Shown: positions 8,417 through 64,000 of the stretch, in pieces | How the letters are laid out: each line of letters opens with the position of its first letter | How positions within the stretch are numbered: position 1 is the first letter of the stretch | Program-made: the position numbers and the translations under genes | Source: Oopsacas minuta | Taxonomy: Eukaryota > Animalia > Porifera | NCBI GenBank assembly: GCA_024704765.1 | Contig: JAKMXF010000111.1 | Span: 1 to 64,000 of the forward strand | Reading direction: 5' to 3' | Length of the DNA: 64,000 nucleotides | The notes under the pieces: model-generated | The model's database searches: none | The model's input: only the letters and a program-made list of their open reading frames with translations | Told to the model about the DNA's origin: nothing

Positions 8417-11400
8417 TTACTGAGGCTTATTGATGAGAGAAGTTAATAACCGAGTGATGTCATCCATCTTAGTGTTGAGGGAAGAATACCTTGTGTTCAT
8501 ATCCGTTGCTAGGTTATCCAACTAAAAATATTAATAATATTAAGTCATATTACTAAACAAATAATTTCAGATTACCTTTTCATTATTTTGGGCAATCTGT
8601 CGTCTCAGCTCAGTAGAATCTCTCATCAGTGCATTCTCATTCAACTCATGTATTCTACTAGAATATCTCTGATGTTGTAATAACTGTTCATTGTCTACTT
8701 CAGGCAAATAATCTCTGGAGCTGAGAGATCCTCTCTCCACGAACTCATCAATACCATCTACCCCGTAGTACTTCTTCAATTTCCTAGTTGTGATAGATAC
8801 ATACTCAGTCCTCTGTTTGTGTCTAAAGTTGTAGAAACGAGCTATGAGAGAAGTGTCTTGAGATTGAATAATAAAGTTAAGTCTATACCAAGCCACTACC
8901 TTCAGGGCTACCTTCTTAACTTTTGAGTATCTGAATAAATGAACAAAATATTAACACAGAATTAAATACAGTCAACTCCTGTTATACCGAAACTCAAATG
9001 ACCGTGATAATTACTTCGATATAGCCGATGATATACGTTACTCTGACGGTTTTGCGACAATATTTGGACAATTTAGACTTCGATATAACAGGAGTTGACT
9101 GTACATTGATAGTACTAACCTATCTGTAAGCTGTGCGATCAGTAGATTGAGATATATAACACTAGTTATGAATACAAACACAAGAAATATGAACACAGAG
9201 AACCAATTGAGTCTCACGATATAATTATCAGCAAACACAGGACTCTGTTCTAACAGTACTCTGAGGCCCAATAAAGCAGAGTACCAAACCCGATCATCAT
9301 ATCCCTCTGAGTACATAGAAGGGTTAAGAGCGTCGAGTCTACAATCTGTCGCATTTGGACAGGTCCAAGAAACAGGCAGTCGTAGACTCACAAAATAAGC
9401 ACCAGAAAATACGAACAGTGTCCACCAGAAGAAAAGCAAGAAAGGCGGAATTTCAAAGAACGTAACACTAGCGAGGATTCGTATGTAAGTTCCAAAACTG
9501 TAATACACATTGAAAAGTTTGAAAATTCTCATACAATTCAATACAAAAGTGACAGGCATGAATATCCATTGTATCGGAGAAGACAAACCTCTCAGAATAA
9601 CCGTTATGAATAGAGAAATCAAACCTCCCTGATCAAACCAGTTGAAATTATCAGAGAAATAATCAATCAAAAATCTAGTAATAAATATATTAGAAAGAAA
9701 ATGAGCGAGTTTCTCTCTAAAAGTCATATCTTTCATTTTATAAAGACTTTGATCAGGTTTGGATTGTGAATCTTCTGGTGGCGGATCGTCATCTGCTTCT
9801 GGAGAAGATTTGAACATCATATGAGGGCTGGAGAACATACTAGCGTATTTCTCTTCAGCTTGTTGCTTCGTAGACAATCTTGCAACTAACTCTCTTTTGT
9901 GTTTAAGATACAAACTTGTCCTCTTCATAATCTCTACTATCTCTGTAATCTCTGTAATTACATTTGAGAACCAGAAACATACAACATAGAATTCTGCCAG
10001 GCCTCTCAGTACAGAAATAGCATCCAATCTGTATTCATTAGGATTTTCTTGTCCTGCTACTACCACAAATGAAGTGAACATAGAAAACAGAAACAGTAAG
10101 AATAGAACAGTTTTGTAGAACAGAAAGTATCTCCCAAACTTATTCATTTGCTGTTTGACATAGAGACGTACTGTGCCGTGGTAAGCCAAATCTTCAAGAC
10201 GATTGTCAGCTATGAGTTTCACAAAATACGGCTTAGAATACAGAAAGCCAGATTCACCAGGGAGATTGTTAGAAATATCTGTGTCTAAATACTTCAGCAT
10301 TACCTAAAATAAGATATAATAATGTACAGTGGATGCTCGTTATAAGCTCACAATTTCCTGTATATTTATGCCGGTTATAAGAACATGAATTTGCAACTCC
10401 CAAGGGTGTTCTTATAACCGGCATACATTGTTTAGATAAACAAATTTGTACAAGACAATACAGTGAAAATTCCACAAATGAGGTCAGTGGAAACGAGGTA
10501 GCAATTTCCAGCGTCTCTGGCCCCCATTTATAGAGGTTACACTATACCTTGAATTGACTAGTACTTCCATCGTCTGGTATAACCATTCTATCCAATAATG
10601 CTGCTGTAGATTTAAGAAGTTTCTGCTTAACAACTTTACACAGAGCATATTCCTGTGTACGAATATATTCATGTACATAATCCATATATGGACTCTCTCT
10701 TAATATCAACAGAGCAGCAGCAGAATCTCTACCGTTATCTAGCGCGATTTCAAGAGCAGAGTTACGCTTAGAATCTGTACAATGGAATGAGGCACCGCTG
10801 GTTACGAGCTCCATTATAGTAGACACGTGTCCATGCTCGCTAGCTACCATTAACGGAGTACGTAGATTCTCACGACACCGTACATCTATGCTAGCTCCGA
10901 ATGAAATGAGTATAGGGATTATGGAAGCACGACCCTTCGTAGCTGCTATGTAGAGACCTGTCTCACCTTCAAAGTTCGTCTGATCAACTGGACATTTGTT
11001 CCTATAACAATTAAGAGTACATTAATACAATGAAACCTCCATAAATGGGCTCTGTGGAAGCGGGGAACTTCTGGAAAAAGATATTAAAATGAACCTCTAC
11101 AAACGGTGTCCCTGATACTCTGTTTGTGGATGTCGATTATGAGAACACCATGTATAAGCACCATCCTCTGGAAATGGTTCTCATATATTCCTGCATGTTT
11201 ATACAGGTTATAAGAACACATATTGCTACTCACAAGAGTGTTCTTATAACCGGTATCCAGCGTACAAACTACCTTAATAACAACAGCACTACATTATCTA
11301 CACCAGATGCACAGGCATAATGTAGGGGAGTACATTGATAAACATCCTTAACATGAGTAGAAGCTTTGTTACACAACAAAAACTCTACTACAGTACTGTA

Positions 11401-12355
11401 TCCCTTCCTAGCAGCTAAGTGTAGTGGAGTACGTTCATCATCTGTACGTGCATGAATACTGCCATTATTTTCTATCAGAATCATCAGTACCTAATACATT
11501 AATGGCAATACCGTACACACATATGAGAAGTCTATAATTGGTACAAATATGGTCGCTAACCCATCAAATGAATATACAGTAAACTCTCGTTATAACAAAG
11601 TCGGATATCGCGAAATTCCAGTTATAACGAAGTGTTTTAGCCCATTAATAGATTTTACTCCGCTTATAAGGAAAATATAACGAATTAGTGTAGTCTCTTG
11701 AGCTCAGATATAACGGGAGTAAACTTACTTCCAAAGATCCTGAAAAAGCAGCATAATGCATAGCAGAGAATCCATATTCATCCTTCTCCCAGGGTGTAGC
11801 TCCCTCTTTCAATAATTTCTCTACAATATCCTTATTATTAAGCCTACAAGCTTGATGCAAACTATAAGTAAGATCGAATAATTCTTCCGGCTCGATATTC
11901 TCCTGTTTAAGTCTATTCAGTAGAATATACACAATATCAGTACGTCCGTAGGTGGAGGCAAGACAGAGGAGGTCTAGATTCTTCCCAGTACTCTCCGATT
12001 TCTCAGGGTCTGATAGTGGATTACTCTCGCCTTGCCTCATATATCTCATTGAATTTTCAGCTACAAATAATAATAATAATAACTTATCCATGGTACTATC
12101 AGTGAATAACCTACGCTGTAATGGGCAGTTACACAGTAACTGATGTTTAATAAGATCCATGTCGTGTTTATCCATTGCATCCTCTAGAGCGTTGAAATCG
12201 AGTATCTGTGAATGAAAATCTTTAACGCGAGTTTGCTTGAAAACTCGCGAAATTGACAACATAGGTAAAGGTGGGAGAGAAGCAGATGTTTCGACCTCTG
12301 GGTTGTTAGCTGAATTCACTTCCGTCAATTGTAATACATCAAAATTTGAGGCCAT
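8417..12355 (-). CDS. Ankyrin-repeat TRP cation channel (TRPA/TRPV-like)
   Basis: About 8 ankyrin repeats over exons 12355-11728, about 11490-11270 and about 11000-10545. Six-TM exon about 10300-9118 ends in S6 IYLNLLIAQLTDR|YSKV. C-terminal coiled-coil exons about 8922-8575 and 8520-8417. Confidence 0.88.
8969..9101. mobile_element. MITE family 1 (Tc1/mariner-pogo type, TIR CAGTCAACTCCYGTTATA, TA flanks)
   Basis: TIRs cagtcaactcctgttata / tataacaggagttgactg, flanked by TA, in a TRP intron. Related copies at about 11577-11726, 16845-16988, 23327-23413, 27602-27760, 30820-30863, 43232-43348, 47586-47660, 50621-50725, 56664-56820, 57760-57863, 63648-63799. Confidence 0.9.
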
Positions 12356-34175: not shown

Positions 34176-37100
34176 TCACACGTCAATTAGAAAAGCATTA
34201 GCTTCCTTCTGAGTAGGTGTATGAGTATTAACGCGTGTTTGTGAATCAAGCAGTGATCCGTTGTACTCTGTTTCAGTATTCGGGGGGGTGTCAATTAGTG
34301 TAGGGGGTGACGGAGCGTAGTATTCAGGGGGCGATCTGCTGGTCGGTGGTATATTACCCGGTGTAGGAGTGTCATTTAAGTCCTGGGTTACGACAGGCGG
34401 TCTGGGAGTAGGTTTATGCTTCATTGGTACAGTAGGACTGTTGAAGTGAGCCATGTTCTGTGGCATAACCTGTCTGGGGGCAAATGCTGGCATCATTGGA
34501 GGGAAAGGAGCGGGTGGGTAGTAGTTAGGGGGTGGTGGCATGAACCCTGGATGGTACCCGGGGAGAGGAGTAGGTTTCACTTGAGCTGTGGTTACTATCG
34601 GGGGTGCGTCTAGTCGCGAGGGGGGGCCTGATGTGAAGTTTGGCAATGTGGGAACAGCTGATGAAAATTGAGTAGGAGATTGGCGATTTTTGTCATTCTT
34701 AGCCTCGCTATCACTATTAGAAGACAGCTGTGAACTAGGAGATACAGATCGAGGACTGAGATAACTCTCAACTTGAGAACTAGGGAGAGAGGATTCACCG
34801 AGTTTCCGTTTCAATTCGGTAATTTCGCGATCTCTCCAACGAATTTCCTGCTCGTTTCTCCGCGAATTATATATATTCTCTTGCACACGCTTTTCAAGAG
34901 AAGCAATTTGTTCCAGGAGAGACTTTTCGCGTTGACTATGTTGCTGCTTCAACTCTGTAATCTCTGATTTAAGTCCTTCCCTCTCCGATCTAACAGAATC
35001 TATCTCATCATGAGATCTATGATCTTTCCCTTCTAACAATAATTGACTATTTCTAGACTCGTTCAATTGTCTATGTAGTTCAGATTCTTTCGTATTAAAA
35101 TACTCGTTTAGAACTTGTAGCTTCGTGTCAGAATCTCCCAGCTGTTTCTTGAGCAGAATATTAGAAGATTTGACACACGACAGGTTGTCATCTAAATCTT
35201 CACACCTCGCCTTAAGTGTCACATTGTCCTCACTCAGGAATTTATTTTGTAATTCAAACTTATCCTTGACTATTGTAACTTGTTCTAATTCACTCAGAGC
35301 CTTTGCAGTATTCGTCAAAGTGTCAAAAATAGTTTTTACTTGAGTATCAGTAACTTGGGATTTGCCAACAGCTTGTGGCTGTAATTTCAACAGTGAGTTA
35401 GTTAGCACATCAATCTCTCCTTCAAGTGTGTGTATACGTTCTGAATTCGCGGAAATTCTCACCTCTCTCTGTTTCAGTTCATCTTGTAATGAAGCCTTCT
35501 CTCGCTCCACTTCATCGCGGTTTTTCTCAACTTTTGCCAACCTTTCTTTGAGCTCAGCGAAGCTGTCAATATTCGCATCAAGCCGCAATTGTAACGTCAT
35601 CTTTTCCGTATCAACCTGCCTCATTTGACCATGGATAATATCCATCTTACTATTAAGAGAGAGTATTTCCTCTTGAGCTGACGAATTCAGTGTCCCTAAC
35701 CTCTCTGCTTCAATACACTTATCATTAAGTGCATTTTGTGTGGATAATAGCTCAGAATTGCATTGTGTAGATTCAGATTCTAATTGCATGATGTATCGGG
35801 ATTTAGATTCTAATTCCTGATTACAGGTTCCAAGATTCGATTTCAGGGAAATTAGCTCTTCTTGTGAGGCAGCGTTCGCTTCTTTTAAGGTGTCATTTTT
35901 TGCGATTTTCGACTCAAGCGTTTTCTTATCTTTCTGTAGAGTAGCAACCTTCTGTTCCAGAGCCTTGACATGATTAACTGTAAGAATTTTCTGCTTCACA
36001 ACTTCATTTCTAACACTACTTCTACTCACATATAAATGAGTTATTAATAGAGGTATAGCTGTGTATAGTGTTATGTAGAATACACCATATCTGTGGATAT
36101 AATCGCGGATTATGTCACCTAGAGGTGAGGGGATGAAGCCGAATAGTTTGGTATTTTCATGTTCAATGTGTTGTTCTTCTGGGTGGGAATTTTCGTGAGG
36201 AATATCTTCGCTAGAGGGAAGTTCAGTAGGTGATTGATCTATGGGTATTTCCTGTTGATTGTCTTCTATAGCATCTTCAAGTTGTGAAATTTCACGATCT
36301 GGATCATCCACAACTTCATGTACAAATTCATCAGTAGTCTCAGGCTGTGAAATTTCGAGAGTTGGATCATCCACGTGTTCATGTACATATTCATCAGTAG
36401 TTTCTGGCTGTGAAATTTCGAGAGTTGGATCATCCACGTGTTCATGTACATATTCATCAGTAGTTTCTGGCTGTGAAATTTCGCGATATGGATCATTCAA
36501 ATCTGCATATACAGACTCGTCCGTAGTTTCGAGCTCTGAAAGTTCACTATCTGAACTCTCAAATGGATCTAAGCTACCAGATTCATACTCAGGCTCGCTG
36601 TCGTAATGATCTTCCTGGTTTGAAATTTCGCGATATCCATCATCAATATGCGCTTCACTAGGCACTGTTACCTCCTCATATACATCAGGGGTTTCGTAAG
36701 TAAAATCTTCTCTGTGTGAAGTTTCACGATATTCCTCAACCGGTGGAACGTATTCTTCAACAATCTCTGGTTCATATAGAGGTGTCTCTACAGGAGTTAA
36801 GTCATCAATAGGAGGAGGAGGAGAGGGAACTTCCGGTTGTCTAGCAGCCTCCTCAGCTTCCAGTATAATCCTAGCAGCTGATGGATCAGATAACAGCTCA
36901 GAGTATCTATCAGGTTCTATCTCATCCAAACGCAATACTCCTTCAGCTTCTAGAATTCTATTCAAGAATTCTTGATCCATCTGTCTTTTGAGGTTATTCA
37001 TCGCTTCTGTGTCTGGCGCGTGAAAATCAGCTGTCTCAATTGGATCAGATTTTAGTCTCCATTCATTGACCGTATCAGGGATCTCTGGATTATCTCTCAA

Positions 37101-37511
37101 ACTTTCGAAGATCCCTCCGCTCCCAATTTCAGGATGTATTTGAGATTCATCCTCGCGGTTTTTCTCACCTTCATTGTCAATCGGTTGCTCCCATGTGTCT
37201 TCAATTTCCACCAGGTCTCTGCACAATACCATGTATTCACCTATCAATTGCTTAGGGAAGAAACCGTTCTTACCCCGAGATTCACCATACCACATTTCAT
37301 CACCCTCTTCATTTACTCCCATTTCTTTCATAAACACCCAAACCTTAACGTCACGTTCTAAGGGCAGTTCATCAGCTGCTTGGGGGGTGTACACACGGAA
37401 ACTCCGCCCTTGGGATATGACCTGTGAACAGTCGTGATTGCAGCATTTTTTCGCATGTAGGACGTGTAAAAGCGCGAGAATCGTAGCTAGTAACAAATAG
37501 GATATTCGCAT
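34176..37511 (-). CDS. MIA3: TANGO1/MIA3-like ER export receptor, single exon, 1111 aa
   Basis: Signal peptide, MIA-type SH3 (CCNHDCSQVISQGR...WYGESRGKNGFFPK), acidic lumenal region, TM (YGVFYITLYTAIPLLITHLYV), long coiled coils, proline-rich tail with PPP motifs. Confidence 0.9.
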   Translation of the reverse strand: MRISYLLLATILALLHVLHAKKCCNHDCSQVISQGRSFRVYTPQAADELPLERDVKVWVFMKEMGVNEEGDEMWYGESRGKNGFFPKQLIGEYMVLCRDLVEIEDTWEQPIDNEGEKNREDESQIHPEIGSGGIFESLRDNPEIPDTVNEWRLKSDPIETADFHAPDTEAMNNLKRQMDQEFLNRILEAEGVLRLDEIEPDRYSELLSDPSAARIILEAEEAARQPEVPSPPPPIDDLTPVETPLYEPEIVEEYVPPVEEYRETSHREDFTYETPDVYEEVTVPSEAHIDDGYREISNQEDHYDSEPEYESGSLDPFESSDSELSELETTDESVYADLNDPYREISQPETTDEYVHEHVDDPTLEISQPETTDEYVHEHVDDPTLEISQPETTDEFVHEVVDDPDREISQLEDAIEDNQQEIPIDQSPTELPSSEDIPHENSHPEEQHIEHENTKLFGFIPSPLGDIIRDYIHRYGVFYITLYTAIPLLITHLYVSRSSVRNEVVKQKILTVNHVKALEQKVATLQKDKKTLESKIAKNDTLKEANAASQEELISLKSNLGTCNQELESKSRYIMQLESESTQCNSELLSTQNALNDKCIEAERLGTLNSSAQEEILSLNSKMDIIHGQMRQVDTEKMTLQLRLDANIDSFAELKERLAKVEKNRDEVEREKASLQDELKQREVRISANSERIHTLEGEIDVLTNSLLKLQPQAVGKSQVTDTQVKTIFDTLTNTAKALSELEQVTIVKDKFELQNKFLSEDNVTLKARCEDLDDNLSCVKSSNILLKKQLGDSDTKLQVLNEYFNTKESELHRQLNESRNSQLLLEGKDHRSHDEIDSVRSEREGLKSEITELKQQHSQREKSLLEQIASLEKRVQENIYNSRRNEQEIRWRDREITELKRKLGESSLPSSQVESYLSPRSVSPSSQLSSNSDSEAKNDKNRQSPTQFSSAVPTLPNFTSGPPSRLDAPPIVTTAQVKPTPLPGYHPGFMPPPPNYYPPAPFPPMMPAFAPRQVMPQNMAHFNSPTVPMKHKPTPRPPVVTQDLNDTPTPGNIPPTSRSPPEYYAPSPPTLIDTPPNTETEYNGSLLDSQTRVNTHTPTQKEANAFLIDV
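36262..36490 (-). repeat. 63-bp (21-aa) coding tandem repeat in the MIA3 lumenal region
   Basis: EISQPETTDEYVHEHVDDPTL repeated about 3.5 times. Confidence 0.9.
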
Positions 37512-38227
37512 GGTTGTTGCACACTGCTAAATATATAAAATATCATATACACGTATAATTCTATCTTTATAATAGCTTACACTATAACATGAATATATGT
37601 GGGAAGCCACCGACTATCAATGTGGTTAATAATGCTGTATAACTTTATAATTAACTAAGTTAAGGTCAGTCATAATTGACTGAACACAGATTCTATGGTG
37701 CATTCCATACTGACAGATTGATAACCACGTATTTGTGGTTTCATAGGAAATGCATAAAAGTAATAATAATAAAGTGATTAATTAGCCATAAATGCTATAT
37801 TCAGCAACGCATTTTGTGATTAGTGAGAAATACGTAGAATCTATTCAATGTGCGTAACTACAAGCTTGATAAACTGTACAAGTGTCTACGCATAATATAC
37901 ACGGGGGCTGATCCAGGTCTGATATGTCAATACACAATATTAGATAAGAACTTGATAATCATAATTTATAAGGCTCTATAATGACCATATAAGGTAATAC
38001 TTATTATCACAATGGCTGCACAATTATATTGCAGTGTAACCACGCCCATTTATGGAGGCTATACTGTAACATGCAAATATGGATCCCCACTTTTCACAGT
38101 CATTCTACGGTCCTGTGGTGATAATTAGAAACCAGTGACGTAATTTGGAGAAACAGTGAATTAAGTGATGTGTACTAATCTAATAATATCTATCAATGCG
38201 ATACAAAACAATTGAAATATATCAAAA

Positions 38228-46800: not shown

Positions 46801-49800
46801 TAAGAGATTCCTTGTGAATTCTCCTATACTTATTCTCTAAAACAGATAACTGATTCTGTAGCAAAACAGCCTCTTCTTCGATATTAGAAGATTCAGTGGG
46901 TAGAGCTCTTGATTGCTCCAACTCTGTTAATTGTTTGCGTAGTATCATGACGTCATTAGAGCACTCCTGTAACTACATAATTAAGAGATAAAGAAGCAGA
47001 AATTTGCATGAACGTAATAAATGTGAATTCCAGATAATTAGACAAGATACGCCCAAACCTCCTGCTCCAAATGTAAATTTCATATACTTACATCAGTAAT
47101 ATTCATAATGTAAGTCCTCCCTAAAAATTCTAATAAATATCATATCAGGCCATTCTTTACCAAATTAACGTGGTGTCAGGGACGCTGATAAATGCTACAT
47201 TGACACGAATGTCTATATTTTCACTCCGTTTCCACAGGCCCCGTTCATGTAGGTTACATTGTATTAACTTAACTGCCAAATACCTTGTCTTGTAGTTCAG
47301 TATTATTCATAACCAATTCATCCATCTCTTTATTATGATCCATTATGAAAGTCTCTCTGTCCACAACGAATTGATTTTCAATCTCATCTCTACTTCTTAT
47401 GGCCTTCTCAAGCTCCATGGTTAGGTCTTTGGTACACTGATCCAACTGGTGTATTTGCTGTTCTCTAGTCGTTACCATTTCTTTAAGCTGACGTCTATAT
47501 GGTTAGATGATTACGATAAAAATAGTCACTCCAATGTGCGTATTAGCGATTCAACCATGGATTGTGGATTTCGTATATTTAATGTTAGTCAACTCTCGTT
47601 ATATCGGAGCTCAAGGGACGGCGATAATTACAACCGATGAAGTATATGTTACCCTCCAAGGTTAAATAACTAATAAATATATAGGCTTACCGTTGTTCTT
47701 GTAGCCTCTTAATCCGCTCTAAATCAGCAGAAGGAGAGGGTGTAGGAGAAGAAGTAGTATTACCATCACTAACAGGTCTAGATGGTGAGAACGGAGAATT
47801 AACATCTAGAGACGATTGTCTAATTGTTTGTTCCACAGAATTTACTCTCTCTAAGCTCAGCTGTTTATCTGATTGTTGAGGAGTTTGCTGTTGCTGGAGT
47901 TCTTTCTCTAGCTCGCGTACTTTACGTGCCTAATTAAAATCCATAGTAATCGAGTATGGTAGTATCCGTCTATTAGCAAGTTATTTCAGGGATCACTTTC
48001 AAGTATTTACTGATTATTATTTTTCGCAATTATTGACAGATTTTAGAAGTTTTACAACTTTCCATTAACACCAATATTCGTGTGAATACTCGTTAATGCA
48101 AATATATAAATTCTTTCTTGCAAAAGTCGCATTTGTTTACACTAAAACACCTGTAAGGGTGGCGTATTGTTTGTCTAATCAGCTGATAAGTTTATTGTGA
48201 TTCTTTGTTCTGCTGTATACACCTGGCGGTGCTCAAAATTTCGCGAATACTGCTTATGTATTAATTTGATTTTCCATTAAATTAGATACAAATCTGGACA
48301 GTTTCTATAATTTATTATCATGGCTTGTTACTTTTATAACATTATCACTAGAATGAAGTTCGCCAACATACGCCCCTGAACTGCTGGCTATATTTAAGCC
48401 TCTGTAAAATATATACTTACCAACTCAATTTCCCGAGTAGACACAACCTTCGGAGCAAGAATAGGATTATATCCACTACCATGAGCTTCACTAAACTTGC
48501 TAACAGTCAGTAGTTGTTTCTCTAACATTTCTCTTTCATTATCTAATCTCAGAACCTTGCTATTGAGGACATTAACAGCACTCTCTTTATCCTGTGCATA
48601 TGACTGTAGAGCTCTATAACGCTTGTATTCTTCTGCTGAGTCGTGTTTAGCTGCTTCATTCAATTCCTTTATTATCTGGTACATACGTATATAAAACTAC
48701 TGTAGAATTCGGATAAGATGTATTAGGTTTTGTCCCCTTTTAGGCTATGTTCCTAAACTTCTTGTCAAATATTTCCCTATTTAATACTCACCAAGTACCA
48801 ACCCCCAACCAGATGTCATAAAAACCAGTGAATCGTATGTCAAACCTCCAAAAGTGAACACCTCTCGTATGTGAACATTTTGGCTGGTCCCCAGGGTGTT
48901 TACTTACTGAATGTTTTTACTGTATATATTTAGATGGCAACATATTTTCCCATACAAAATACACTATAACTACCTTCTCCTGATTATAATGTAGAAACTT
49001 AATAGTATTAGCTTTCTCTAAATCAGAATTACGTATAGCAGATACACGTTCTTGTAGATTCTCCTTCTCTTTACTGAGTAGATTAATTTCTTTAGTTAGA
49101 CTATTCTCTCTGTGTTTAGATTCTTCCTGTATCTGTTTGAATAGAGTTCTGTATTTCTCTTCTGAGTTAGCTTTAGCAATCCTTATAGCGTTATCTCTCT
49201 CATAATCTAGCAAAGCATATAGTAAATACGGTAAAAAAATAAGTACTATCCGAGTGTCTGTCTTATCCAAAATAGACATTGTAAATGAATGGAAAGTAAA
49301 TTTTTGATTTGACAAAAGAAGTAAGTTTTAAAGTTCTACCGCAAACAAATAAATATTTATTAGACTACTATAGTCAGCTGTCTAATAAGGATTTGTCAGA
49401 CAATAGTATGAGTAATCAATGAATGTTTGCTTAACCAGTTAGACAAAACAACTGTTAATTACCTGATTTTTCTCGTAATTATATTCTACAGCGTAGACAA
49501 TAGACAATTAATTATGTTATCAATCATAAAATCGGTAGATTGGAATGTCGTATTCATTAATTCATTAATTTAAGGTAAGGCATCAGTATAATAATATTTA
49601 GCTGATATGGAGAAATATGCCAAATGATTTTATGCAAATATTTATAGCAGGGGCGGGTCTAGAGAGGGGTAGTGAGGTTGCACTCCCACCTGGAATTCCT
49701 ATAACCAGAGCTTGTGGACCCCTTGGTAGTCCACGGACGACAGCAGGGGTCCACAGAATGTGTTATAGGGTTCAACCTGTGAAAAGGTTGGGAACCGCTG

Positions 49801-54881: not shown

Positions 54882-55459
54882 TCTAAAATACAAAACAAGT
54901 TACTACTACATACATACAACTTCCTCTATATATATATATATAATATCAGGACAATAGTGCTTATAGAGCAAAGATATTATGAATTATGTCATGTGATGTA
55001 TACATTGTGATAATTATTTTGGAATACACTTTTGGGATTCAGAATCATAATATGTGTATGTAAAACGGGAAATTTGTAAGGAAAATGATAGGAATAGAGT
55101 GTAGGGTGATGAAATATGGAAAATTAGCCTTTAAGTTATAACAACTTAAAAAAGGTGTGAAAAGTGATTAATCATATGAAAAATCTTAGAGGTATAGGTT
55201 TTGAAAATATCAAAATTGTAATCTGCATACTTGATTACCCCTGACCACCCATTGGAACGAATTTCTAGCTTCATTTTGAAATATAATTACCAAAAAGGTG
55301 TGAAAATTTCACGGAACCTGACAACCCATAAGAACATCACACATATACACACATTAACAATTGTTGCTATCAAAATATACAGCTAAAACAAGATATACAC
55401 ACAAACAAATAAAAATGTATTTTTCAATAGAGGGGTGTATATAATACAATAACAATATC

Positions 55460-58400
55460 TTATAAGTCCTTTTCCTGTGAGAATGAGACAGAAAGGTTTC
55501 TGAATTCATTATCTTCAACACCCGGGCTATAAGTCAGTGAAGAATCAGCTTGTGGATGCAGAGCTATATCATTATATAGCCCTTTAAAATCGGAAGCAAC
55601 TGGAAGATCATTGATGTCGTTATAAGCGGATTTCTGTATTTTCTGGGCAGAAATACTAATAGAAAGATTTGGTTCAGCTTGATATACATTCTCTTCAGCC
55701 TGCAGCCCTGCGTAATGAGGATTTGAAGTAACAGCTGGGTTATTTGCCTCTTTCACGAATTCTATACCAGCTGTCGCGTATGCTGGGTTATTGGTAACAG
55801 CTTGATCATGAGGTTGTGCATTTGCTATTTCTTCATAGTTATTTGCAACATCAAGCGATAAGTAGTGATCTTCTAAATGCAAATATATAAAGAGACAGTA
55901 CTACACAGTAAATTCTAAGAAACTGATTTTAACAACTTTCCAAATTTAGATATTGAAACCAGAAAATACTTAGAATTATGGCGCAGACAACTCGAGCAAA
56001 TAAATCAACATATAATGTAATTAAAACGGATACAATACAATTATTATTATTACACAAACACAGATTAAGCAATATTACAAAATTCGAATGAGTCTACTCA
56101 GGTAAACACGCTGAACTACGTGGTTATGAAAATATATTTGGGGCATAATTTCATACCGTTTCCCTCCACCAACACTGATTGGACTACACAAGCGATATAT
56201 TCGTTGGCTAATTCATTGTTAAATGCAAAGAATTATTGAATATTAAACCATTAAAAACAAAACTAATTCCATTTGAACAAGAAGTGATAAAAATAGTTGA
56301 AATATCAAAGTTTAGATTTCATGAATTAGTCAACTTATCGGTTCCCAATCTTGGGTCCACGGACGACAGCAAGGGTCGACAGAATATGTTAAAATAGGTA
56401 TAGGAGTCCATGAGTAGGGTTGGAGGCGAGTGACATGGATAGATATATAGACAAACTATAGAATAACACGGGTATTACCTTCTGAAGATTGTGTATTCTT
56501 CTTATTGCTTCTCTTAATAAGACAACAGCAACAAAACAATAAGAATATAAATATAACAAGCGCTATTACTAGGAAACATATCACTGGTATAACCACGTAA
56601 TATAGATAGCCTTCTACAGAGAGTCCTAAATAATGTAGCAATTGAATAAATATGATTATAATAAAGTCAATTCTCGTTATATCGGAATTTCCGCATTTAT
56701 CGAAGTCTGAAACAGTACAATATAAGTTACTAAACTCTCAAAAGTAACAAACTTCACCAGTTACGTATAACGAAGTCATTTTCTTGGTCCGTTAAGCTTC
56801 GATATAACAGGAGCTGACTGTAGTTATTAATAATGAATATAAGTCCTTTATGTGTCTAGTTTGTTAATTATAGTTCGCTCTGATTTAATACGGACGTTTA
56901 TAAGGCTCAAAGTTTCACAGATTGAACTGATAAAAGCAATGCGCTATCATACGGATGACAGTATAATAATTCAGAGCGTAGTATTTAGCTGTTCATTTGT
57001 TGTATAATACATGTAGTCATCAGTTTGGTAATTACTCATAGTTACAGCTAGAACAAACCTTGGGAAGCACCTAAAAGTGTAAGAGATAAAATAGTATAAA
57101 AAGAGATGTATTCAAAATATAGAGAAATAAATATCGAAAAATAACTTACTAATCACTTCACAAGTGAGAGGATCGATTCCTATAAAAGGAAATAACTCAT
57201 AATAACTACAAAAATGCCTCGTAAATATATGTGAACCGATAGCATAGGTAGTGCGAATTCTCACTCCTCAATGCCACACCCATATTCGCGAAATTTCTCA
57301 GAGAAGAAAATACACACTCACCATTTCCTTCGTTAACACACTCACAGAAATACGATCCGATCGTATTGGTACAATTAGCATCTGATGGACACAAATCGTC
57401 ACCTGTCGTACACTCATCCAAATCAAGCTCACAATTATTCCCAGTTGTATAAGTTGGACACGTACAATTGTATGTACCAAGATCCAGATCTACATCTTGA
57501 CACTCTCCACTGTTACAAGGGTTAGGAAGACAGCTTGTGTTGTCTATAAGAAAGTATAATGTAACTTCTATAAACGGGTGTGAGGGACGGCGAAAAATGC
57601 TAACAAGTTTCCGCCTAATAGTGGAGGTACAATTGCATTTGTATATGGGACTAGGAAATCGCTCTATTTATTTCATTCCGTTTCCAGAAGTTTCCAGCTT
57701 CCACAGGCCCTATTCGCAGAGGTTACACTGTATAGTATCTTGATAAACAGCAATAAATACAGTCAACGATCAACTTCCGTTATATCGAACACTGATATGT
57801 CAAACTCCACTTATATCAGAATAATGACAGTCCAATGAGCATCGATGTAACGGGAGTTGACTGTAGTGAGATTTTCGACTCAATCTAGTTCTCTAGCCTA
57901 AATGCTCTAGCCTTATGAATCGTAGCTTAGCTTACCATATCTACAATTCTTTCCTTTCCAAGGAGGAATACAATCACAGAAATAATCATTACGTCTATCA
58001 GAACAAGGAGCAGCGTTATGACAAGGAAAACCAGCACACTCATCAATATCTACACAATAAAATCCTGTAAAATATGCACAAAGTGTGTAGTAGAAGTAAC
58101 TAACCGATTTCGCATTGAGGTCCAGTGAATCCTGGCAGACACAAACACTCATAAGTATCTGTAACACCGTCTAAGCATTCCACTATGTTAGAGGCGTTAC
58201 AGGGATTATCAGCACAAGTGATAACTAGAAACAAGGAATAAATATATAATAATATTGCGCTAGTAGGAGACTATCAAGTTATGATCATACCATCTCTACA
58301 TAAATCTCCTGTATAACGATCATTACAGATACAGTCAAACCCAGCTAGTAAATCAAAACATTCTCCATATACTCCACATACAGAGCTAGATCCTGGGTAC

Positions 58401-61400
58401 TCTAATATGACAGCACTGAGCTCTGTCACACACTCATCAAGTTCTAGAATAATAAGATAATATACGTATTATAAAGTATAGACAAGACTCTCTTTTTTGA
58501 ATGGTAACATATTGATCCTGTACCAATTTGAGTCTCACGTTTGGTACTTTGAGTCATATTAACTCACCAGTATCACACTCTAATCCAATATAGCCATCAA
58601 GACATTCACAATTAAACGTATTAACACCATCAACACAGCTACCATTACCACAGAACACTCCCATGCAGTCATCTATGTTCTCTAAGCAAAGATCTCCTCG
58701 GAATCTATAGGATAAATAAGTAAACAAACAAATAAACAATCAAACAAACAAACAAATATCACTTACCCAACCACACATTGACAAGTGTAATTGAATCTAT
58801 TATTAACACAAGTAGCTTCATTCGCGCATTCATTTCCCATAGCACAATAGTCAGTACGATCAATACATGTATCACCCTCAAATCCTACTGTACAAGTACA
58901 GTTAAATCCTCCATGGAAGTTGGAGCATACTCCATCATTGTTACAGGGTGATAGATCACACTCATTGATGTCATCAGCACATAGTGAACCTGTATGGAAG
59001 AGAGAGGTTATTAAACTTGCCAACTCAGGAGATTTCAGGTCTTATCCAGCAGGAAATTGTGAATATTCCGGTATTTGCAAGGAAATCTCGGAAAAGATTT
59101 TCCATATTTTGCGAATTTCTGGATATTTTCTGGTGGAAAAGGAGGAAAATGCGTGGAAATTGTAGAAGTTGGTACGTATTAAATAAAAATGTAGATATAT
59201 ATAGAATTGGGCAAATAGACCGCAATATTCTTGGGTAAACATGTATCTTACCTTCATATCCATCTTGACATCTACATCTGAAATCATTTCCAGGGAGATC
59301 TATACACACAGCATCATTATCACAAGGATTACTACTAGGATCAGATGGACAATTGTCTGTATTATCTCCACAGTAAGCACCAGAATAACCATCACTATAA
59401 ATAGAGAATTAACATAACTTTATGCATGAAAGTATATACAGAACATTGCGGTTAATAGAGCCACCACCGGTTAATCAGGCCAACACCTAATCGGGTCAAA
59501 ATGGTCTACTGTATTTGATAACTTACAGGCAACTACAGTTAAAGAAAGGCTCAGCTCCATCAGTATCACAGGTAGCGCCATTTAAACAAGAGTTGAAATC
59601 AACAGAACAATAATCAGGATTAGGATGATCAATTGCAGCTAGATAATACAAAAATTTTATAATATTAGTATAATCAAATCAAGTACTGTCCGTATACACA
59701 AATACATATGATTAATTGGAAGATCACAAGAGAGGGTAATACCAGTGATATGTGTATATATAGGCAGTTGTTCCCAACCTGGCTCCATGGGTGAAATCTC
59801 CCTCACAGATACAATTAACATTTCGAATAATCGAATCATAGATCACAGAGAATTCTAACTTACCAAGTGAGCAATTCCTTCCAACATAACCCGCATCTGT
59901 ACAATTGCAAACATATCCATTAACAAAGTCTATACAATCTCCAGTCACACAGGGATCTGGATGACACTCATTGATTTCTATATAGAAATAAAATCGAATA
60001 TTCTAGAATAAATAACTTGAAAATATTCGGGAAGATACCAAATTTCTATAATACATCAATACATAAACTCGTATTTCAATAAATAATAAACTGATTCAAG
60101 GTAAAGGCACAATAACCTCTACAAAAGCAGCAGGAAGATTACCAACTGAGCCATCTAATTCCCCCTCATACCATTCTTCATTCAACTTTTTCAATAAGCA
60201 AATCATATCGCCAGCTTTGAAACACAAATCTCCTGATACGTTTTCATTATAATCGTACAATGCTTTAGCTCTTGGCAGAAACTCGTCATGAAATTGAGTA
60301 GTCTTTGTGCTCGTTTTAACTGGAGAAATCTCATGAGCTGTTTTTGGAGTCGTTTCAATTGGAGAAAAATCCAGTTTTTCCTCTATAAATCCGATAGGAA
60401 AAATACCTTTTAACCCATTCAATTCACCCTGTAGCCACTCATCATTCACACTAGTTATATTATGAATGACGTCACCGATATTAAAGCTAAGATCACCATC
60501 AGTCCCGCTGGCAAACTCATAAATAGCTGTACCAATGTAGCCCGTGGGAGCGGGGATTTTAGGGACGGGTTCGGGTTCTTTTACAAGTTCCTTCTCGGGT
60601 AGTGCTTCTATTATTTCGATGAATCCCTCGGGGAAAATTCCCTCTTTATTCCCGACAGCTAACGACCCTTTATACCACCCACCATCAAGTTTATCAAGCA
60701 AATACACATAGCTATCTTTCACAAGAGGGAGGTCACCTGCTTGATCACCCGGAAAATCGAATATTACCTTCGCGCGTGCGCCAACCATTAGGTCTTCAGG
60801 AGCCGGGGGACCCTCTTCGAGGTCAGTGACAATTTCAACCTGTGCCTTCGGGAACATCCCAACCGCGTGGGTGCTTTCACACTCCCCCTCAATCCATTTA
60901 TCACTCAAGTACCTTATAAGGAAAATGACGTCACCCTTTTTAAAACTAAGATCACCATCAACAACAGAATTATAATCATGCATAGCAACAGCAAACGGTT
61001 TATCAGCTGATATAATTTGCCCGCCTTCATCAGGGATTCTACGCACTATTTTTATATTACTCCCTAACACGAGTCCTTCACTGTCACCCTCATTAGCGCA
61101 ATAGTACCAATTATCGTCAACTTTCTCTAACAATATTAAAAAATCTCCTTTGGAAATGGTTAGCATATCTGGTTGATTTGTTGGGTAGTGAACTAGTGCA
61201 AAACCGTGTGGTTCGGAACACACATATTTATATAGGGGGTGTCCAGGCTCGGGGCGTGGTGGGAGCGAGGGAGCCTTGCGGGCGGATTCGTCATGGGGAC
61301 GTTGTTTCAACGGGGGAGCATTAGGTTTTAAAGGCTTAGGGTTTCCTGGTCGTGTGGGCTTTGCGGGGGCGGAATGTTTCACCGGCGCTATAGCAGGCTT

Positions 61401-64000
61401 GACCGGTGCCTGTGGCCTTGAAGGAGAGGGCTGCTGCTTAGCTTGAGGGGCAGCGGGTCGCATGGGTGATGGTTTAGCAGGTTCTGGAGATTCAGCGGTT
61501 TTCGTCACTTCAACTTGTGTTTCAGCTAAATCAGATGGGTAGAATGCTTTAGGTTGTGCCGGCGCTTTACGTATTGAAGGTTTTTTGGTAACAACCGGGG
61601 GTGGAACAGCTGTCTCCGTTGTATCTGGTATTTTGCCTGGCCTAGGGGGAGGCGGATGTCGCCCAGCTGGAGCTGATTTAACCACTGGCTTTTCTGCTTC
61701 TTTCACAAGGATATTCGACAGGAAAATATCAGAAGGGGGAGACGTTGGTCTTATTGGGGGTCTATCGTCCGTTTTAGCTGTTACAGGAGGCTGACTTGGT
61801 CGAGTAGGGGAGCTGATCTCATTCTCAGGCGAATCAGAGATATCTAGATTAACGTAATTCTGAGGTTTAGGAGGGACAGGCTTAGAGGTAATGGGAGGAG
61901 GTCTGGCCCTAGGAGGTAGCGCTTTATCGTCGCTATTTTCACCTGGAGGTGGTCTTGTGACTAAATAATAAGGATGTGATTGTGTTATAGGCTCGGAGGA
62001 TATAATAGTTATATCTTTATTAATTAATGTTTGTTTGGGTTGTTTATTTGTTGTTGGTGGCGGGTTAGATGCATATTGCGGTGGTTTGGGTGGTGGAGGT
62101 CGTTGGGTACTAGATTTCCTGCCTGGCGGATGGTTGGGAGGTAAAGGAGGTGGTCCTCTTGATGATGGAATTACAGTTTGCTCCTCGGTCATATTAAACT
62201 ATATTATAATATCAGATTCTTATATTATTAATATACTTTCATTTTATGCATAAAGATGTATAAGATGGTGATATAACCATGGATATATAGCTGAATTGGT
62301 AGATTTATTAGCGCCAATTTGGAGAGAAATTATTAGGCAAAAAAGTGGGAGAGGAATGTCAATATATATTGGGATAATTGTCCGCTTAAAATTAGGACAT
62401 TACATCACAATTTGCACAAAATTAAAAAATTAAGCATAATTATAATTATGGCTGTAAGAAACGGTTGGCACCATATATGTGTAGGAAACCTGACCAATTG
62501 AAATATACTTGCTATGTCCTTGTTAATCATACAGTAACAGTCAGGATTACTTAATTTGAACTTATAGATACCAACCTGTGAAATTCCTTCTAAAATCCGT
62601 GAGAATTGGCATCCCTGTGACCCTGACTGTATAATAATTACCCCTTACAACCGAATAAATACATATACCCCATAAAGACTACTACAGATATAAACCAGTA
62701 GAGTACAATATTTGGGGCCCTTATGAATAAATAATATTATAATATAAGTGTCTACTAACCTGCATCACAAAGTGTTCCCATAAATCCAGGAGAACAATCA
62801 CAAGTATAACTACCAACTGAATTTTGACAAATACCATATTCACAGCTTGAAGTAGGACAATTATCGATAACTATAAATTGATGAACAATGAATATTTGTA
62901 CAGTGTGAGCCTGTTATAAGAACACCATTGGGAGTATCAATACGTGTTCTTATAACAGGTATAAGTATACAGGAATATGTGAGAACCGTTTTCCAGGGGA
63001 TGGTGCTTATATCAGGTATCCATTCTATAGTTTTTGACAAAAAAGGTTTCCTATGCTTATCAGATATTCAACCATGGATGGGGAAATTCGTATATTTTAC
63101 GCTATATAGAATTCCTTCTCCGAACAAGAGAGAGTGCTTCAAAATTACCTAAATAACATCCAAGCAGATAAAGGAAATCCAGTATCCATGGTTAAACATG
63201 TAATAAGCATACAGGGGGCATCATTACGTCATAACATTATAATTGTAAGGCACTTACCTTCTGTACAATTCTTGTCTTCATATCCGTTATCACAAACACA
63301 ATCATAATCTGTCATATGATTAGTACATCCTCCATTTACACATGGATCTGGATTACAGAGATCTATACCTAAACACAATAGATTCTGATAAATAAGTACT
63401 TAACTGGGATTCCAAGAAGGTTATCAAGTCTGTAAATCTATGTAGAAATTAACAAACCTGTTTCACAATTTATGCCAGTATACCCATCAGTACATGTACA
63501 CATAGAAGCATTGATACCAGTAGTAGTGCATACGCCATCGTTACAGACCTGGGGGTTGTGATCACAGAACGCAAGATCTATAAATAGGAGCGAATCAATT
63601 CGTAAAGTTGTTCTGAAAATTACTGGAATTTTTCATAAATTTAATACAACAACTCCAGTTATCGAACACGAATATATCAAAGACTCAAACTGTACAAATA
63701 TGGTCTCAAAACGTTAAAGTAACATAATTCAAAGGTTATACCGAAATAATTATTACTGGTCCCTTGAGCTTAGAGCCTTAGACATAACGGGAGTTGTCTG
63801 TAATTCATAAATCCATAGTCCAAATAAAAAAACTTACCATTCTGACAGTTGTTTCCTGAGTAATCAGGGTTACATTTACAGTTGAAAGGACCATCACAGA
63901 ATCCACCAGAAGGATCTAATAACCAATCACAATAATTTTATATAAACAAAGATTATACGTATATTGAATCTGTTACAAACCGCAATTCATTCTGGGTATA
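55460..64000 (-). CDS. Type-I membrane protein with many Ca-binding EGF repeats (Delta/Notch-ligand-like ectodomain); 5' part lies beyond the window
   Basis: EGF exons about 63920-63840, 63575-63258, 59977-59865, 59640-59525, 59395-59250, 58990-58765, 58705-58565, 58440-58290, 58225-58105, 58050-57935, 57545-57320; micro-exon about 57180-57150; TM exon about 56610-56478; tail exon 55870-55460. All checked junctions are phase 1. Confidence 0.85.
60096..62192 (-). CDS. SH3D19: SH3D19/EVE-1-like protein: Pro-rich N-terminus + five SH3 domains, intronless, nested
   Basis: 698-aa ORF. PRPEPGHPLYKY motif followed by 5 SH3 domains (e.g. AMHDYNSVVDGDLSFKKGD, AKALYDYNENVSGDLCFKAGD...WYEGELDG). Confidence 0.9.
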   Translation of the reverse strand: MTEEQTVIPSSRGPPPLPPNHPPGRKSSTQRPPPPKPPQYASNPPPTTNKQPKQTLINKDITIISSEPITQSHPYYLVTRPPPGENSDDKALPPRARPPPITSKPVPPKPQNYVNLDISDSPENEISSPTRPSQPPVTAKTDDRPPIRPTSPPSDIFLSNILVKEAEKPVVKSAPAGRHPPPPRPGKIPDTTETAVPPPVVTKKPSIRKAPAQPKAFYPSDLAETQVEVTKTAESPEPAKPSPMRPAAPQAKQQPSPSRPQAPVKPAIAPVKHSAPAKPTRPGNPKPLKPNAPPLKQRPHDESARKAPSLPPRPEPGHPLYKYVCSEPHGFALVHYPTNQPDMLTISKGDFLILLEKVDDNWYYCANEGDSEGLVLGSNIKIVRRIPDEGGQIISADKPFAVAMHDYNSVVDGDLSFKKGDVIFLIRYLSDKWIEGECESTHAVGMFPKAQVEIVTDLEEGPPAPEDLMVGARAKVIFDFPGDQAGDLPLVKDSYVYLLDKLDGGWYKGSLAVGNKEGIFPEGFIEIIEALPEKELVKEPEPVPKIPAPTGYIGTAIYEFASGTDGDLSFNIGDVIHNITSVNDEWLQGELNGLKGIFPIGFIEEKLDFSPIETTPKTAHEISPVKTSTKTTQFHDEFLPRAKALYDYNENVSGDLCFKAGDMICLLKKLNEEWYEGELDGSVGNLPAAFVEVIVPLP
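62901..63025. mobile_element. MITE family 3 (CAGTG..GTTATAAGAACAC ends, internal inverted repeat)
   Basis: Near-identical reverse-complement copy at about 11140-11262. Related copies at about 7550-7650, 10326-10430, 15950-16010, 32168-32220, 44314-44703. Confidence 0.85.

Follow-up and report, generated by a model that had tools for sequence, protein, structure and literature searches.

Nested genes in glass sponges

Nested single-exon genes have already been documented as abundant in glass sponges. The genome of A. vastus contains 2432 nested genes (12.4% of its genes), and 12,409 of its 19,578 transcripts are single-exon. In O. minuta, 9872 of 16,340 transcripts are single-exon, and 83 nested genes are annotated—a number attributed by the authors to the annotation method (PMC10282587). 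The SH3D19 gene within an intron of the Delta gene of O. minuta is one more such case. It shares with the described nested genes the class of sponges, the location of a single-exon gene in the intron of a multi-exon host, and the conservation between species. As with those genes, it was missed by the automatic annotation of O. minuta, which lacks SH3D19; the gene is a concrete case of the under-calling of nested genes that Francis et al. suspected for this genome. No mention of the gene pair was found in the glass-sponge nested-gene literature (PMC10282587), a source from which orientation statistics for sponge nested genes are absent. The locus lies at the edge of the window—the whole 64,000-nt stretch that was analyzed, from contig JAKMXF010000111.1 of the hexactinellid Oopsacas minuta—and the features described below are all located on the minus strand.

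The Delta host gene

The host gene is the single Delta gene of O. minuta and encodes a Notch ligand of the DSL type. It features a DSL domain, approximately 14 EGF repeats, a transmembrane helix, and a tail. The first-pass annotation had described it as an EGF-repeat membrane protein; the repeats and the transmembrane helix are indeed present, but the label is generic, and the host is a Delta/DSL Notch ligand. The depositors named the host proteins Delta and Delta-like, and the gene is the Om_Delta of the study that described Delta as a single gene in glass sponges, in which its best BLAST match was JAG2 (PMC5684314). The DSL domain is located at approximately 64743–64369, just beyond the window edge (L006:139–513; 44 bits against a Pfam cut-off of 24.2), and the exon that encodes it spans approximately 64743–64429. 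An MNNL/C2-like domain scores 28 bits in the relative L007, above the cut-off of 22.5; the N-terminus of the O. minuta protein is outside the window, and for that of Om_Delta a conserved cysteine pattern alone was reported (PMC5684314). The host shares its DSL domain, tandem EGF repeats, single transmembrane helix, and short tail with the Delta/Jagged DSL ligands, but bilaterian Delta has fewer EGF repeats than the roughly 14 of the host.

The exons were searched singly, and the continuity of the frame was verified with phase arithmetic and with the mapping of two deposited proteins: P0130 (APZ81095.1), a transcriptome-derived Delta of 997 aa, and P0135 (KAI6657272.1), a genome model. The window edge cuts an exon starting at approximately 64041, the 3' end of which (63981–64000) is placed by exact peptide mapping of both proteins. 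It is followed by the EGF exons E1 (63838–63915; phase 1-1, AG/GT, open frame, matching aa 253–278 of P0130 exactly), E2 (63458–63577), and E3 (63258–63368). E1 and E2 are conserved in relatives, and E2 and E3 are confirmed by protein mapping. Exon E4 (62760–62870) is 111 nt long, is bounded by AG/GT in phase 1-1, and encodes an EGF repeat with six cysteines that matches aa 356–392 of P0130 and P0135 exactly; its orthologous exon was found in five relatives (L001, L002, L003, L009, and L014). The 3' neighbor of SH3D19 is E5 (59864–59977), a calcium-binding EGF exon. The gene continues with E6 (59527–59638), E7 (59252–59394), E8 with two EGF repeats (58767–58989), E9 (58568–58704), E10 (58291–58443), and E11 (58105–58224). 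All exons from E5 to E11 are conserved in relatives and supported by protein mapping, E7 and E8 by domain search in addition. The acceptors of E12 (57936–58049) and E13 (57322–57543), at 58049 and 57543, were placed by protein mapping; E13 was also detected by domain search and carries two EGF repeats. A micro-exon of 30 nt (57150–57179) is part of P0130 and absent from P0135, and three further residues of P0130 have no placement on the locus. The transmembrane helix resides in E14 (56479–56625), with a Kyte–Doolittle 19-residue maximum of 3.49, and the cytoplasmic tail in the last exon E15 (55460–55872), with the stop codon at 55462–55460; both were placed by protein mapping.

SH3D19 within the Delta intron

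The SH3D19 ORF (62192–60096) lies wholly within the Delta intron 62759–59978 and on the host strand. This intron is 2782 nt long and leaves 567 nt upstream of the SH3D19 ATG and 118 nt downstream of its stop codon. E4 is read straight into E5 in both P0130 and P0135 (aa 392|393; junction 62760|59977), and the Delta mRNA is therefore spliced across SH3D19. Sense-strand nesting of SH3D19 in one Delta intron is thus shown. The first-pass annotation had recognized the shared strand of the ORF and the EGF exons as well as the 118 nt between the SH3D19 stop and the host acceptor, and both were recovered. It had, in addition, postulated an intron of 3280 nt (59978–63257). Its donor (63258|63257) and acceptor (59978|59977) exist and are both in phase 1. 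However, they are not partners: E4 had been missed between them, and the donor is that of E3. The intron is, hence, 2782 nt rather than 3280 nt long.

The SH3D19 ORF consists of a single exon of 698 codons and a TGA (60096–62192) and is absent from the GenBank annotation. Residues 1 to approximately 320 of its translation are proline-rich with abundant PPxP-type runs, and the GC content there is 0.50. The C-terminal two thirds carry five SH3 domains (Pfam SH3_1, five stretches, E = 4.8e-58). In a protein search, the named top matches are all SH3D19 or SH3D19-like, from 1.5e-86 downwards, the best named relatives being the SH3D19 proteins of hemichordates, amphioxus, vertebrates, a mollusc, and Oscarella. 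Judged by domains and matches, the ORF is an intact SH3D19 orthologue, and the earlier assignment of length and identity holds. The exact 698-aa protein has no record in the public genome and transcript assemblies that were queried, and the protein search returned no match above 64% identity. The GC3 of 0.34 is the same as in neighboring genes. Vertebrate SH3D19 (Eve-1, EBP) likewise carries five SH3 domains behind a proline-rich N-terminal region, but identity to the O. minuta protein is just 28–38% over the SH3 part, and the vertebrate proteins are longer (approximately 800–1100 aa vs 698 aa). As related at second hand in PMC4103893, which cites Tanaka 2004, vertebrate SH3D19 binds to the tails of ADAM proteases and plays a role in shedding.

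Conservation in other sponges

The first-pass annotation had proposed synteny in related species as a check, and this turned out in favor of the nesting. In five other hexactinellid assemblies (L001, L002, L003, L009, and L014), SH3D19 lies between the orthologous Delta exons, in the same intron and on the same strand, and in a sixth (L013) the locus covers the 3' side of the nesting only. The ORF is open in all relatives, with lengths of 708–758 aa. An alignment of the seven species has 281 invariant columns, with the SH3 domains far more conserved than the linker, and the four-fold degenerate sites are saturated (25–41% identity among the species compared). The nesting was kept in one intron across glass sponges with saturated synonymous sites. 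The SH3D19 gene of Oscarella, by comparison, is interrupted by introns and lies outside any such nesting; for O. lobularis, the introns follow from the span of 4088 nt for a gene of 834 aa. A 984-aa relative with 45% identity and AT-rich flanks is encoded on a Logan contig (L005; SRR2064712); the 775 nt before it and the 1 kb after it are free of EGF exons, and the contig is uninformative about nesting. The locus L012 was considered as syntenic and discarded, being a paralogous Prominin locus without synteny.

The flanks of SH3D19

The spacer between E4 and the SH3D19 ATG is 567 nt in O. minuta and 413–1339 nt in relatives and, thus, never falls below 413 nt in six species. This minimum is found in L001, where host introns measure 52–59 nt and yet 413 nt precede the nested ATG. 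The intergenic gap that separates Delta from Prominin, with 578 nt, is of comparable size. On the 3' side, 118–380 nt separate the SH3D19 stop from the next Delta exon across species.

Two strongly conserved non-coding blocks lie inside the SH3D19-bearing intron. The upstream one is a single-copy block of 59 nt (62659–62717), located 43–101 nt after the E4 donor and unique within the window and within the locus of each relative. Its identity to L001, L009, and L014 is 76–81%, whereas four-fold sites are only 33–41% identical for those three; for L002, L003, and L013, the four-fold sites are 25–31% identical to O. minuta. The block may act as a promoter or enhancer, form part of a non-coding first SH3D19 exon, or serve in splicing. 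A structured RNA was considered and dropped: a hairpin with two compensatory pairs is predicted, yet its folding signal is weak, with z-scores of −0.1 to −0.6. No part of the window matched Rfam. Closer to the ORF, the 10-nt motif ATCCATGGTT (62275–62284) starts 92 nt ahead of the start codon; L003 has an exact copy 117 nt ahead of its own ATG, and L001 and L009 have near-matches. The motif was rejected as a promoter element, being a dispersed repeat in the window that does not precede other genes and is only marginally significant.

The second block is located in the 3' flank (60019–60065). Its core TGTATTGA, found in six of seven species 31–42 nt after the SH3D19 stop, keeps a near-constant distance from this stop, no matter how far away the host acceptor lies. 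The block is a candidate for a 3' UTR or 3'-end processing element. The gap between the SH3D19 stop and the host acceptor contains neither AATAAA nor ATTAAA. The lack of AATAAA in these 118 nt had been pointed out before and is real, yet uninformative, since none of 10 genes in the window has AATAAA or ATTAAA within 120 nt of its stop. The motif TGTAWW is present in the SH3D19 3' flank and in eight of 10 gene ends of the window.

An acceptor-like AG (62199–62200) is located 6 nt before the SH3D19 ATG and 561 nt after the E4 donor. It has a PWM score of 5.7, which is the 96.6th percentile of all AGs. In a control test, it reached p = 0.044 in O. minuta and 0.10–0.30 in five relatives. An acceptor-like AG adjoins the ATG in four relatives as well, whereas in L002 and L013 the 20 nt next to the ATG are devoid of AG. 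The acceptor ascribed to the nested gene, hence, scores like a real one in O. minuta but is weakly or not conserved in relatives. Strong acceptors are also found 1–15 nt before the ATG of Prominin, ORF1111, and the ion-channel ORF. Such ATG-adjacent acceptors, at SH3D19 and at its neighbors, could reflect trans-splicing or 5' UTR introns.

Origin and expression of the nested gene

SH3D19 is probably a nested gene of the ordinary kind, though an ancient one, that forms its own transcription unit inside the intron of the single Delta gene. An autonomous gene is favored because of the spacers and the conserved non-coding blocks; the TGTAWW in its 3' flank and a GC3 like that of its neighbors point the same way. 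Transcription of SH3D19 would start from a compact promoter within the approximately 410–1340 nt that separate the ATG from the preceding Delta exon, and it would end at its own 3'-end signals in the 118–380 nt before the next Delta exon. Polymerases transcribing Delta would read through these 3' signals, and splicing would then remove the whole unit. Some SH3D19 mRNAs may additionally gain a spliced leader, like some hexactinellid mRNAs.

Of the 15 recognizable genes in the window, 14 lie on one strand. Such an array is what polycistronic transcription would lead one to expect and counts against autonomy. The same holds for the ATG-adjacent acceptors and for the 59-nt upstream block, the latter insofar as it could be a splicing rather than a promoter element.

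The arrangement itself could be deceptive in two ways. The DSL/EGF and the EGF/transmembrane exons might belong to two genes flanking SH3D19, or the region might be misassembled, as the first-pass annotation had allowed for. The probability of this is close to nil: APZ81095.1 (997 aa) maps exon by exon to the locus from the signal peptide and DSL domain across E4|E5 to the transmembrane helix and tail. The full arrangement recurs identically in five independent glass-sponge assemblies made with different assemblers, a sixth adding the 3' side, and in those assemblies the E4 donor and the E5 acceptor are conserved in phase 1. Alternatively, the ORF could be a retrocopy, either dead or recent, whose multi-exon SH3D19 parent is located elsewhere, in line with its intronless state as opposed to the intron-bearing gene of Oscarella lobularis. 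An ORF that stayed open in seven species with saturated synonymous sites and selectively conserved SH3 domains makes this extremely improbable. The protein search revealed no second SH3D19-like protein from these assemblies, neither a poly(A) remnant nor a target-site duplication was seen at the O. minuta locus, and genes with a single exon make up approximately 60% of the O. minuta gene set in any case. An origin by ancient retroposition, with the parent gene replaced, is conceivable.

Given a genuine and old nested gene, two further explanations concern its expression and make it depend on the host. Both bear on the earlier suggestion that a membrane protein, a soluble isoform, and the SH3 adaptor may all come from one transcription unit. 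In one, SH3D19 would be promoterless: a spliced leader (SL) would be trans-spliced to the AG 6 nt before the ATG in the Delta pre-mRNA, and 3' cleavage would take place in the 118-nt gap. SL trans-splicing is known in hexactinellids, with a leader of approximately 37 nt in A. vastus (PMC10282587, PMC7986045), the AG at 62199–62200 scores like the acceptors of the host itself, and the strong ATG-adjacent acceptors at Prominin, ORF1111, and the ion-channel ORF, together with the 14 of 15 genes on one strand, fit this scheme. It is nevertheless unlikely. The leader was found on only 4% of A. vastus long reads (PMC10282587), operons are unreported in sponges (PMC7986045), and in most relatives the acceptor is weak (p of 0.10–0.30) or no AG is found within 20 nt of the ATG. 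The upstream spacer measures at least 413 nt even where host introns are approximately 55 nt long, and the gaps between same-strand neighbors are 0.5–1.1 kb, compared with gaps that do not usually exceed 100 nt in known operons. The short spacer to the acceptor that marks SL operons is, hence, missing here (561 nt; 413–1339 nt to the ATG in relatives). In the other explanation, the AG serves as the acceptor of an alternative last exon: the E4 donor would be cis-spliced to it, yielding a bicistronic mRNA for a truncated, secreted Delta (MNNL–DSL and a few EGF repeats) and SH3D19. The acceptor-like site is plausible, and the immediate stop that had been predicted for a host donor joined to this site is arithmetically correct in O. 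minuta (G + TT TAA): the phase-1 donor followed by TTTAAT gives Val and then a stop. However, this stop is confined to O. minuta. The same splice runs on in another SH3D19 frame in L001, L009, L014, and L003, and L002 and L013 lack an AG within 20 nt of the ATG. The early stop is also not a designed feature because simple intron retention likewise stops after one codon. Moreover, downstream cistrons are generally translated poorly in animals, and such a bicistronic mRNA is, on balance, very improbable.

Comparison with known systems

A broader proposal joins Delta and SH3D19 into one regulated unit, in which the SH3D19 mRNA would be produced from the Delta pre-mRNA via SL trans-splicing and intronic 3'-end cleavage. 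We regard this as a long shot. If true, an ADAM-shed Notch ligand and an adaptor binding to ADAM tails would arise from the same transcription events or compete for them, and the unit, taken with the array of genes on one strand, would provide sponges with their first described case of operon-like transcription. Bilaterian Delta is a substrate of ADAM proteases and vertebrate SH3D19 an ADAM-binding adaptor; the pairing of the two genes is suggestive, and a functional link in sponges would be conjecture.

The SL trans-spliced operons of nematodes, Ciona, and Oikopleura resemble the O. minuta locus in having same-strand neighbors, an acceptor near the ATG, and an SL—which, for O. minuta, is known from its class. 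They differ in spacing, with approximately 0–100 nt in SL operons and 0.4–1.3 kb at Delta/SH3D19. In addition, the acceptor at the O. minuta locus is weakly conserved at best, and operons do not usually have a downstream cistron placed within an intron.

The nested genes of human and fly offer a closer parallel: they lie within introns, many are single-exon (approximately 41% in human), and they face potential transcriptional interference and intronic polyadenylation (PMC3192792). The Delta/SH3D19 locus is a compact place to study how host and nested genes on the same strand avoid or use premature polyadenylation and interference. Approximately 63% of human nested genes are located on the strand opposite to their host, so that sense nesting as in SH3D19, with approximately 37%, is a minority but not rare (PMC3192792). 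Compared with the human and fly cases, the gaps at Delta/SH3D19 are very tight, with 118 nt from the SH3D19 stop to the host acceptor.

Host Gene Delta

The host gene on the minus strand consists of 15 complete exons in the window, E1–E15, and one further exon cut by the window edge. Every traced exon features AG/GT sites, an open frame, and compatible phases; the exons were searched singly, with frame continuity judged by phases and by mapping of deposited proteins. The series closes with the exon for the transmembrane helix, whose hydropathy peaks at 3.49, and then the exon for the tail, with the stop at 55460. The DSL domain exon lies just outside the window, in O. minuta DNA extending past it (L006; 44 bits), and an MNNL domain was found in a relative. 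A search with the tail exon yielded P0130, a transcriptome-derived protein of 997 aa identical to APZ81095.1 ("Delta [Oopsacas minuta]"), which clusters with a genome model of 1041 aa, KAI6657272.1 ("Delta-like protein"). Both map by exact peptides onto the traced exons. Glass sponges have a single Delta, known from transcriptomes, and Om_Delta was deposited as KX932092 (Schenkelaars et al., PMC5684314). We infer that APZ81095.1 is the product of this entry, which fits with P0130 lacking the last 41 residues and using a 30-nt micro-exon (57179–57150, minus strand) that is absent from KAI6657272.1. In the latter, the next exon is lengthened upstream instead. Three residues of APZ81095.1 could not be placed on the DNA.

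The first-pass annotation had described an intronless SH3D19 gene on the same strand inside a 3280-nt host intron. The donor 63258|63257 and the acceptor 59978|59977 are both present and both in phase 1, but they are not partners: an EGF exon, E4, lies between them (62870–62760, minus strand; AG acceptor, GT donor, 111 nt, phase 1-1, six cysteines). Both Delta proteins join E3 to E4 and E4 to E5 (59977–59864), the latter junction being residues 392|393 at window 62761|59978; hence, the SH3D19-bearing intron is 62759–59978, with a length of 2782 nt. Splicing of Delta mRNA thus bridges SH3D19, which settles, with a corrected donor, the refuting condition that the first-pass annotation had set. 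The intron between E3 and E4 carries a near-perfect hairpin at about 62935–62985, with arms of about 15 nt and a short loop; similar arm sequences recur 3′ of other genes.

Identity and Conservation of the Nested Gene

The nested gene is one open reading frame of 698 codons (62192–60096, minus strand). Its C-terminal 380 residues contain five SH3 domains as judged by Pfam, and its N-terminal 320 residues are proline-rich in translation. In a search among about 5.8 billion proteins, the best named relatives are SH3D19 or SH3D19-like—a hemichordate match at 1.5e-86 and further matches from amphioxus, many vertebrates, the sponge Oscarella lobularis, and a mussel—and four unnamed relatives with 52–64% identity stem from uncurated assemblies. 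Domains and named relatives together uphold the assignment to SH3D19. The gene record of JAKMXF010000111.1 lacks the ORF; this contig belongs to GCA_024704765.1, the genome project on Oopsacas minuta, a glass sponge (Hexactinellida; PMC10280926). Around the ORF, the record features a gene of 778 aa besides Delta, Prominin, and SLC12. The window is not of human origin, and no virus-like feature was seen in it.

In other sponge contigs, the gene order on one strand is EF-hand gene, Delta 5′ exons, SH3D19, Delta 3′ exons, Prominin, and SLC12. SH3D19 sits between the E4 and E5 orthologues in the glass-sponge loci L001, L002, L003, L009, and L014, and a further locus, L013, covers only the 3′ side of the nesting. 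The ORFs of the relatives are all open and comprise 708–758 aa. The spacers before the ATG and after the stop measure 567 and 118 nt in O. minuta, 413 and 140 nt in L001, 455 and 140 nt in L009, 654 and 136 nt in L014, about 1016 and 299 nt in L002, and 1339 and 380 nt in L003. An alignment of seven species features 281 invariant columns, with an invariant share of 40–59% in the SH3 domains versus 3% in a linker, and four-fold degenerate sites are 25–41% identical, that is, saturated. SH3D19 is hence subject to purifying selection, and its nesting is old. The SH3D19-like gene of Oscarella lobularis spans 4088 nt for 834 aa and therefore contains introns, and its neighbours are unrelated; thus, the nesting is not general to sponges.

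Flanking Elements and Likely Expression of SH3D19

The absence of AATAAA past the SH3D19 stop, noted in the first-pass annotation, is confirmed but uninformative, because neither AATAAA nor ATTAAA occurs within 120 nt past the stop in any of 10 gene ends of the window (e.g. stops 52233, 55460, 34176, and 17991). TGTAWW is found in eight of the 10 (expectation about 0.38 per 120 nt), which hints at a non-canonical 3′-end signal in O. minuta. SH3D19 bears two copies, at +33 and +41, both inside a block conserved in relatives. In six of seven species, the block core, TGTATTGA, lies 31–42 nt past the stop, and the distance from stop to host acceptor varies from 118 to 380 nt. This steady position relative to the stop suggests that the block belongs to SH3D19 rather than to the host splice site, and it is best read as a candidate 3′ UTR or 3′-end element.

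Host introns 1–3 of L001 are 52–59 nt long, yet 413 nt precede the nested ATG, the shortest such spacer among six species. A spacer of at least 413 nt despite tiny host introns, comparable to the Delta–Prominin gap of 578 nt, suggests that promoter-sized space is needed. Within this spacer in the Delta intron lies a single-copy, conserved non-coding block of 59 nt (62717–62659), in which O. minuta and three other glass sponges share 76–81% identity despite saturation of neutral/synonymous sites; folding predicts a weak hairpin, and the block has no Rfam match.

The "own acceptor" ascribed to the nested gene, an AG lying 6 nt ahead of the ATG, is on a par with host acceptors in score (96.6th percentile) and reaches p 0.044 in a control test in O. 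minuta, but p is 0.10–0.30 in five relatives, and L002 and L013 lack an AG within 20 nt of the ATG. The GTT TAA stop foreseen upon cis-splicing to this site exists, but only in O. minuta, and simple retention of the intron likewise reaches a stop after a single codon. Release of SH3D19 mRNA from Delta pre-mRNA by SL trans-splicing to such an acceptor appears unlikely: a spliced leader does exist in hexactinellids (PMC10282587, PMC7986045) and strong acceptors adjoin the ATG of several neighbour genes, but just 4% of the long reads from A. vastus bear the leader (PMC10282587) and operons are unreported in hexactinellids (PMC10282587, PMC7986045). An intron-embedded, leader-resolved unit coupling Delta with an ADAM adaptor is more improbable still. 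Taken together, the 3′ block, the promoter-sized spacer, the 59-nt block, the weakly conserved AG, and the species-specific stop moderately favour SH3D19 as an autonomous nested gene, which would have a promoter and a 3′ end of its own.

Genomic Surroundings

The minus strand carries 14 of the 15 recognisable genes of window 1–64000: PDZ, SH2, ion channel, ankyrin, bZIP, pyruvate kinase, LRR-kinase-WD40, OSBP, a 1111-aa ORF, SLC12, a helicase-like gene, Prominin, Delta, and SH3D19. The sole plus-strand gene is a bZIP-Maf-like ORF (6432–6953), and the co-oriented run recurs in relatives. The single-exon 1111-aa ORF (ORF1111; 34176–37511) features a sub-threshold SH3 match and otherwise no recognisable family. 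Strong acceptor-like sites 1–15 nt ahead of the ATG, in the 97th–99th percentile among all AGs, occur at Prominin (54882–54895), ORF1111 (37512–37540), and the ion-channel ORF (10301–10315); a strong ATG-adjacent acceptor is likewise present in four of seven Prominin orthologues (p <= 0.06). These sites point to putative 5′ UTR introns or trans-splice sites. A second, divergent Prominin (L012, same sample as L001; 44% identity) resides in a different neighbourhood of transposase-derived and endonuclease-like ORFs and is a non-syntenic paralogue.

A dispersed repeat with the core TATAACNRGAGTTKACTG occurs in 14 copies on both strands of the window versus 0.09 expected, with sites including 8969–8986, 9084–9101, 11577–11594, 47586–47603, 56664–56681, 56803–56820, 57846–57863, and 63783–63800. 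About 20 nt past the core, ATCCATGGTT often follows (nine exact copies). Several copies lie within Delta introns and directly past gene ends, and the repeat is probably a small non-autonomous element.

Comparison with Known Nested Genes

The association of vertebrate SH3D19/Eve-1 with ADAMs, stated in the first-pass annotation, is backed by PMC4103893, and two ADAM10/17 genes are known from glass sponges (PMC5684314); a functional link between Delta host and SH3D19 guest is speculation. Overall, the observation of nesting is real, with one exon corrected, and its interpretation is supported in part. Glass-sponge genomes are small (Francis et al., PMC10282587), and single-exon genes form the majority (9872 of 16,340 in O. 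minuta; PMC10282587). Nested genes abound in these sponges, with 2432 (12.4%) in A. vastus, and many of the nested genes are conserved; the count of 83 in O. minuta reflects the annotation method (PMC10282587). Being off the gene record of its contig, SH3D19 is one of the missed nested genes of O. minuta. Among human nested genes, about 63% run antisense and 41% have a single exon (PMC3192792); sense nesting like that of SH3D19 in Delta is a minority there, but not exceptional. SH3D19 in Delta is a new, unannotated, and anciently conserved case of an already known kind of nested gene.
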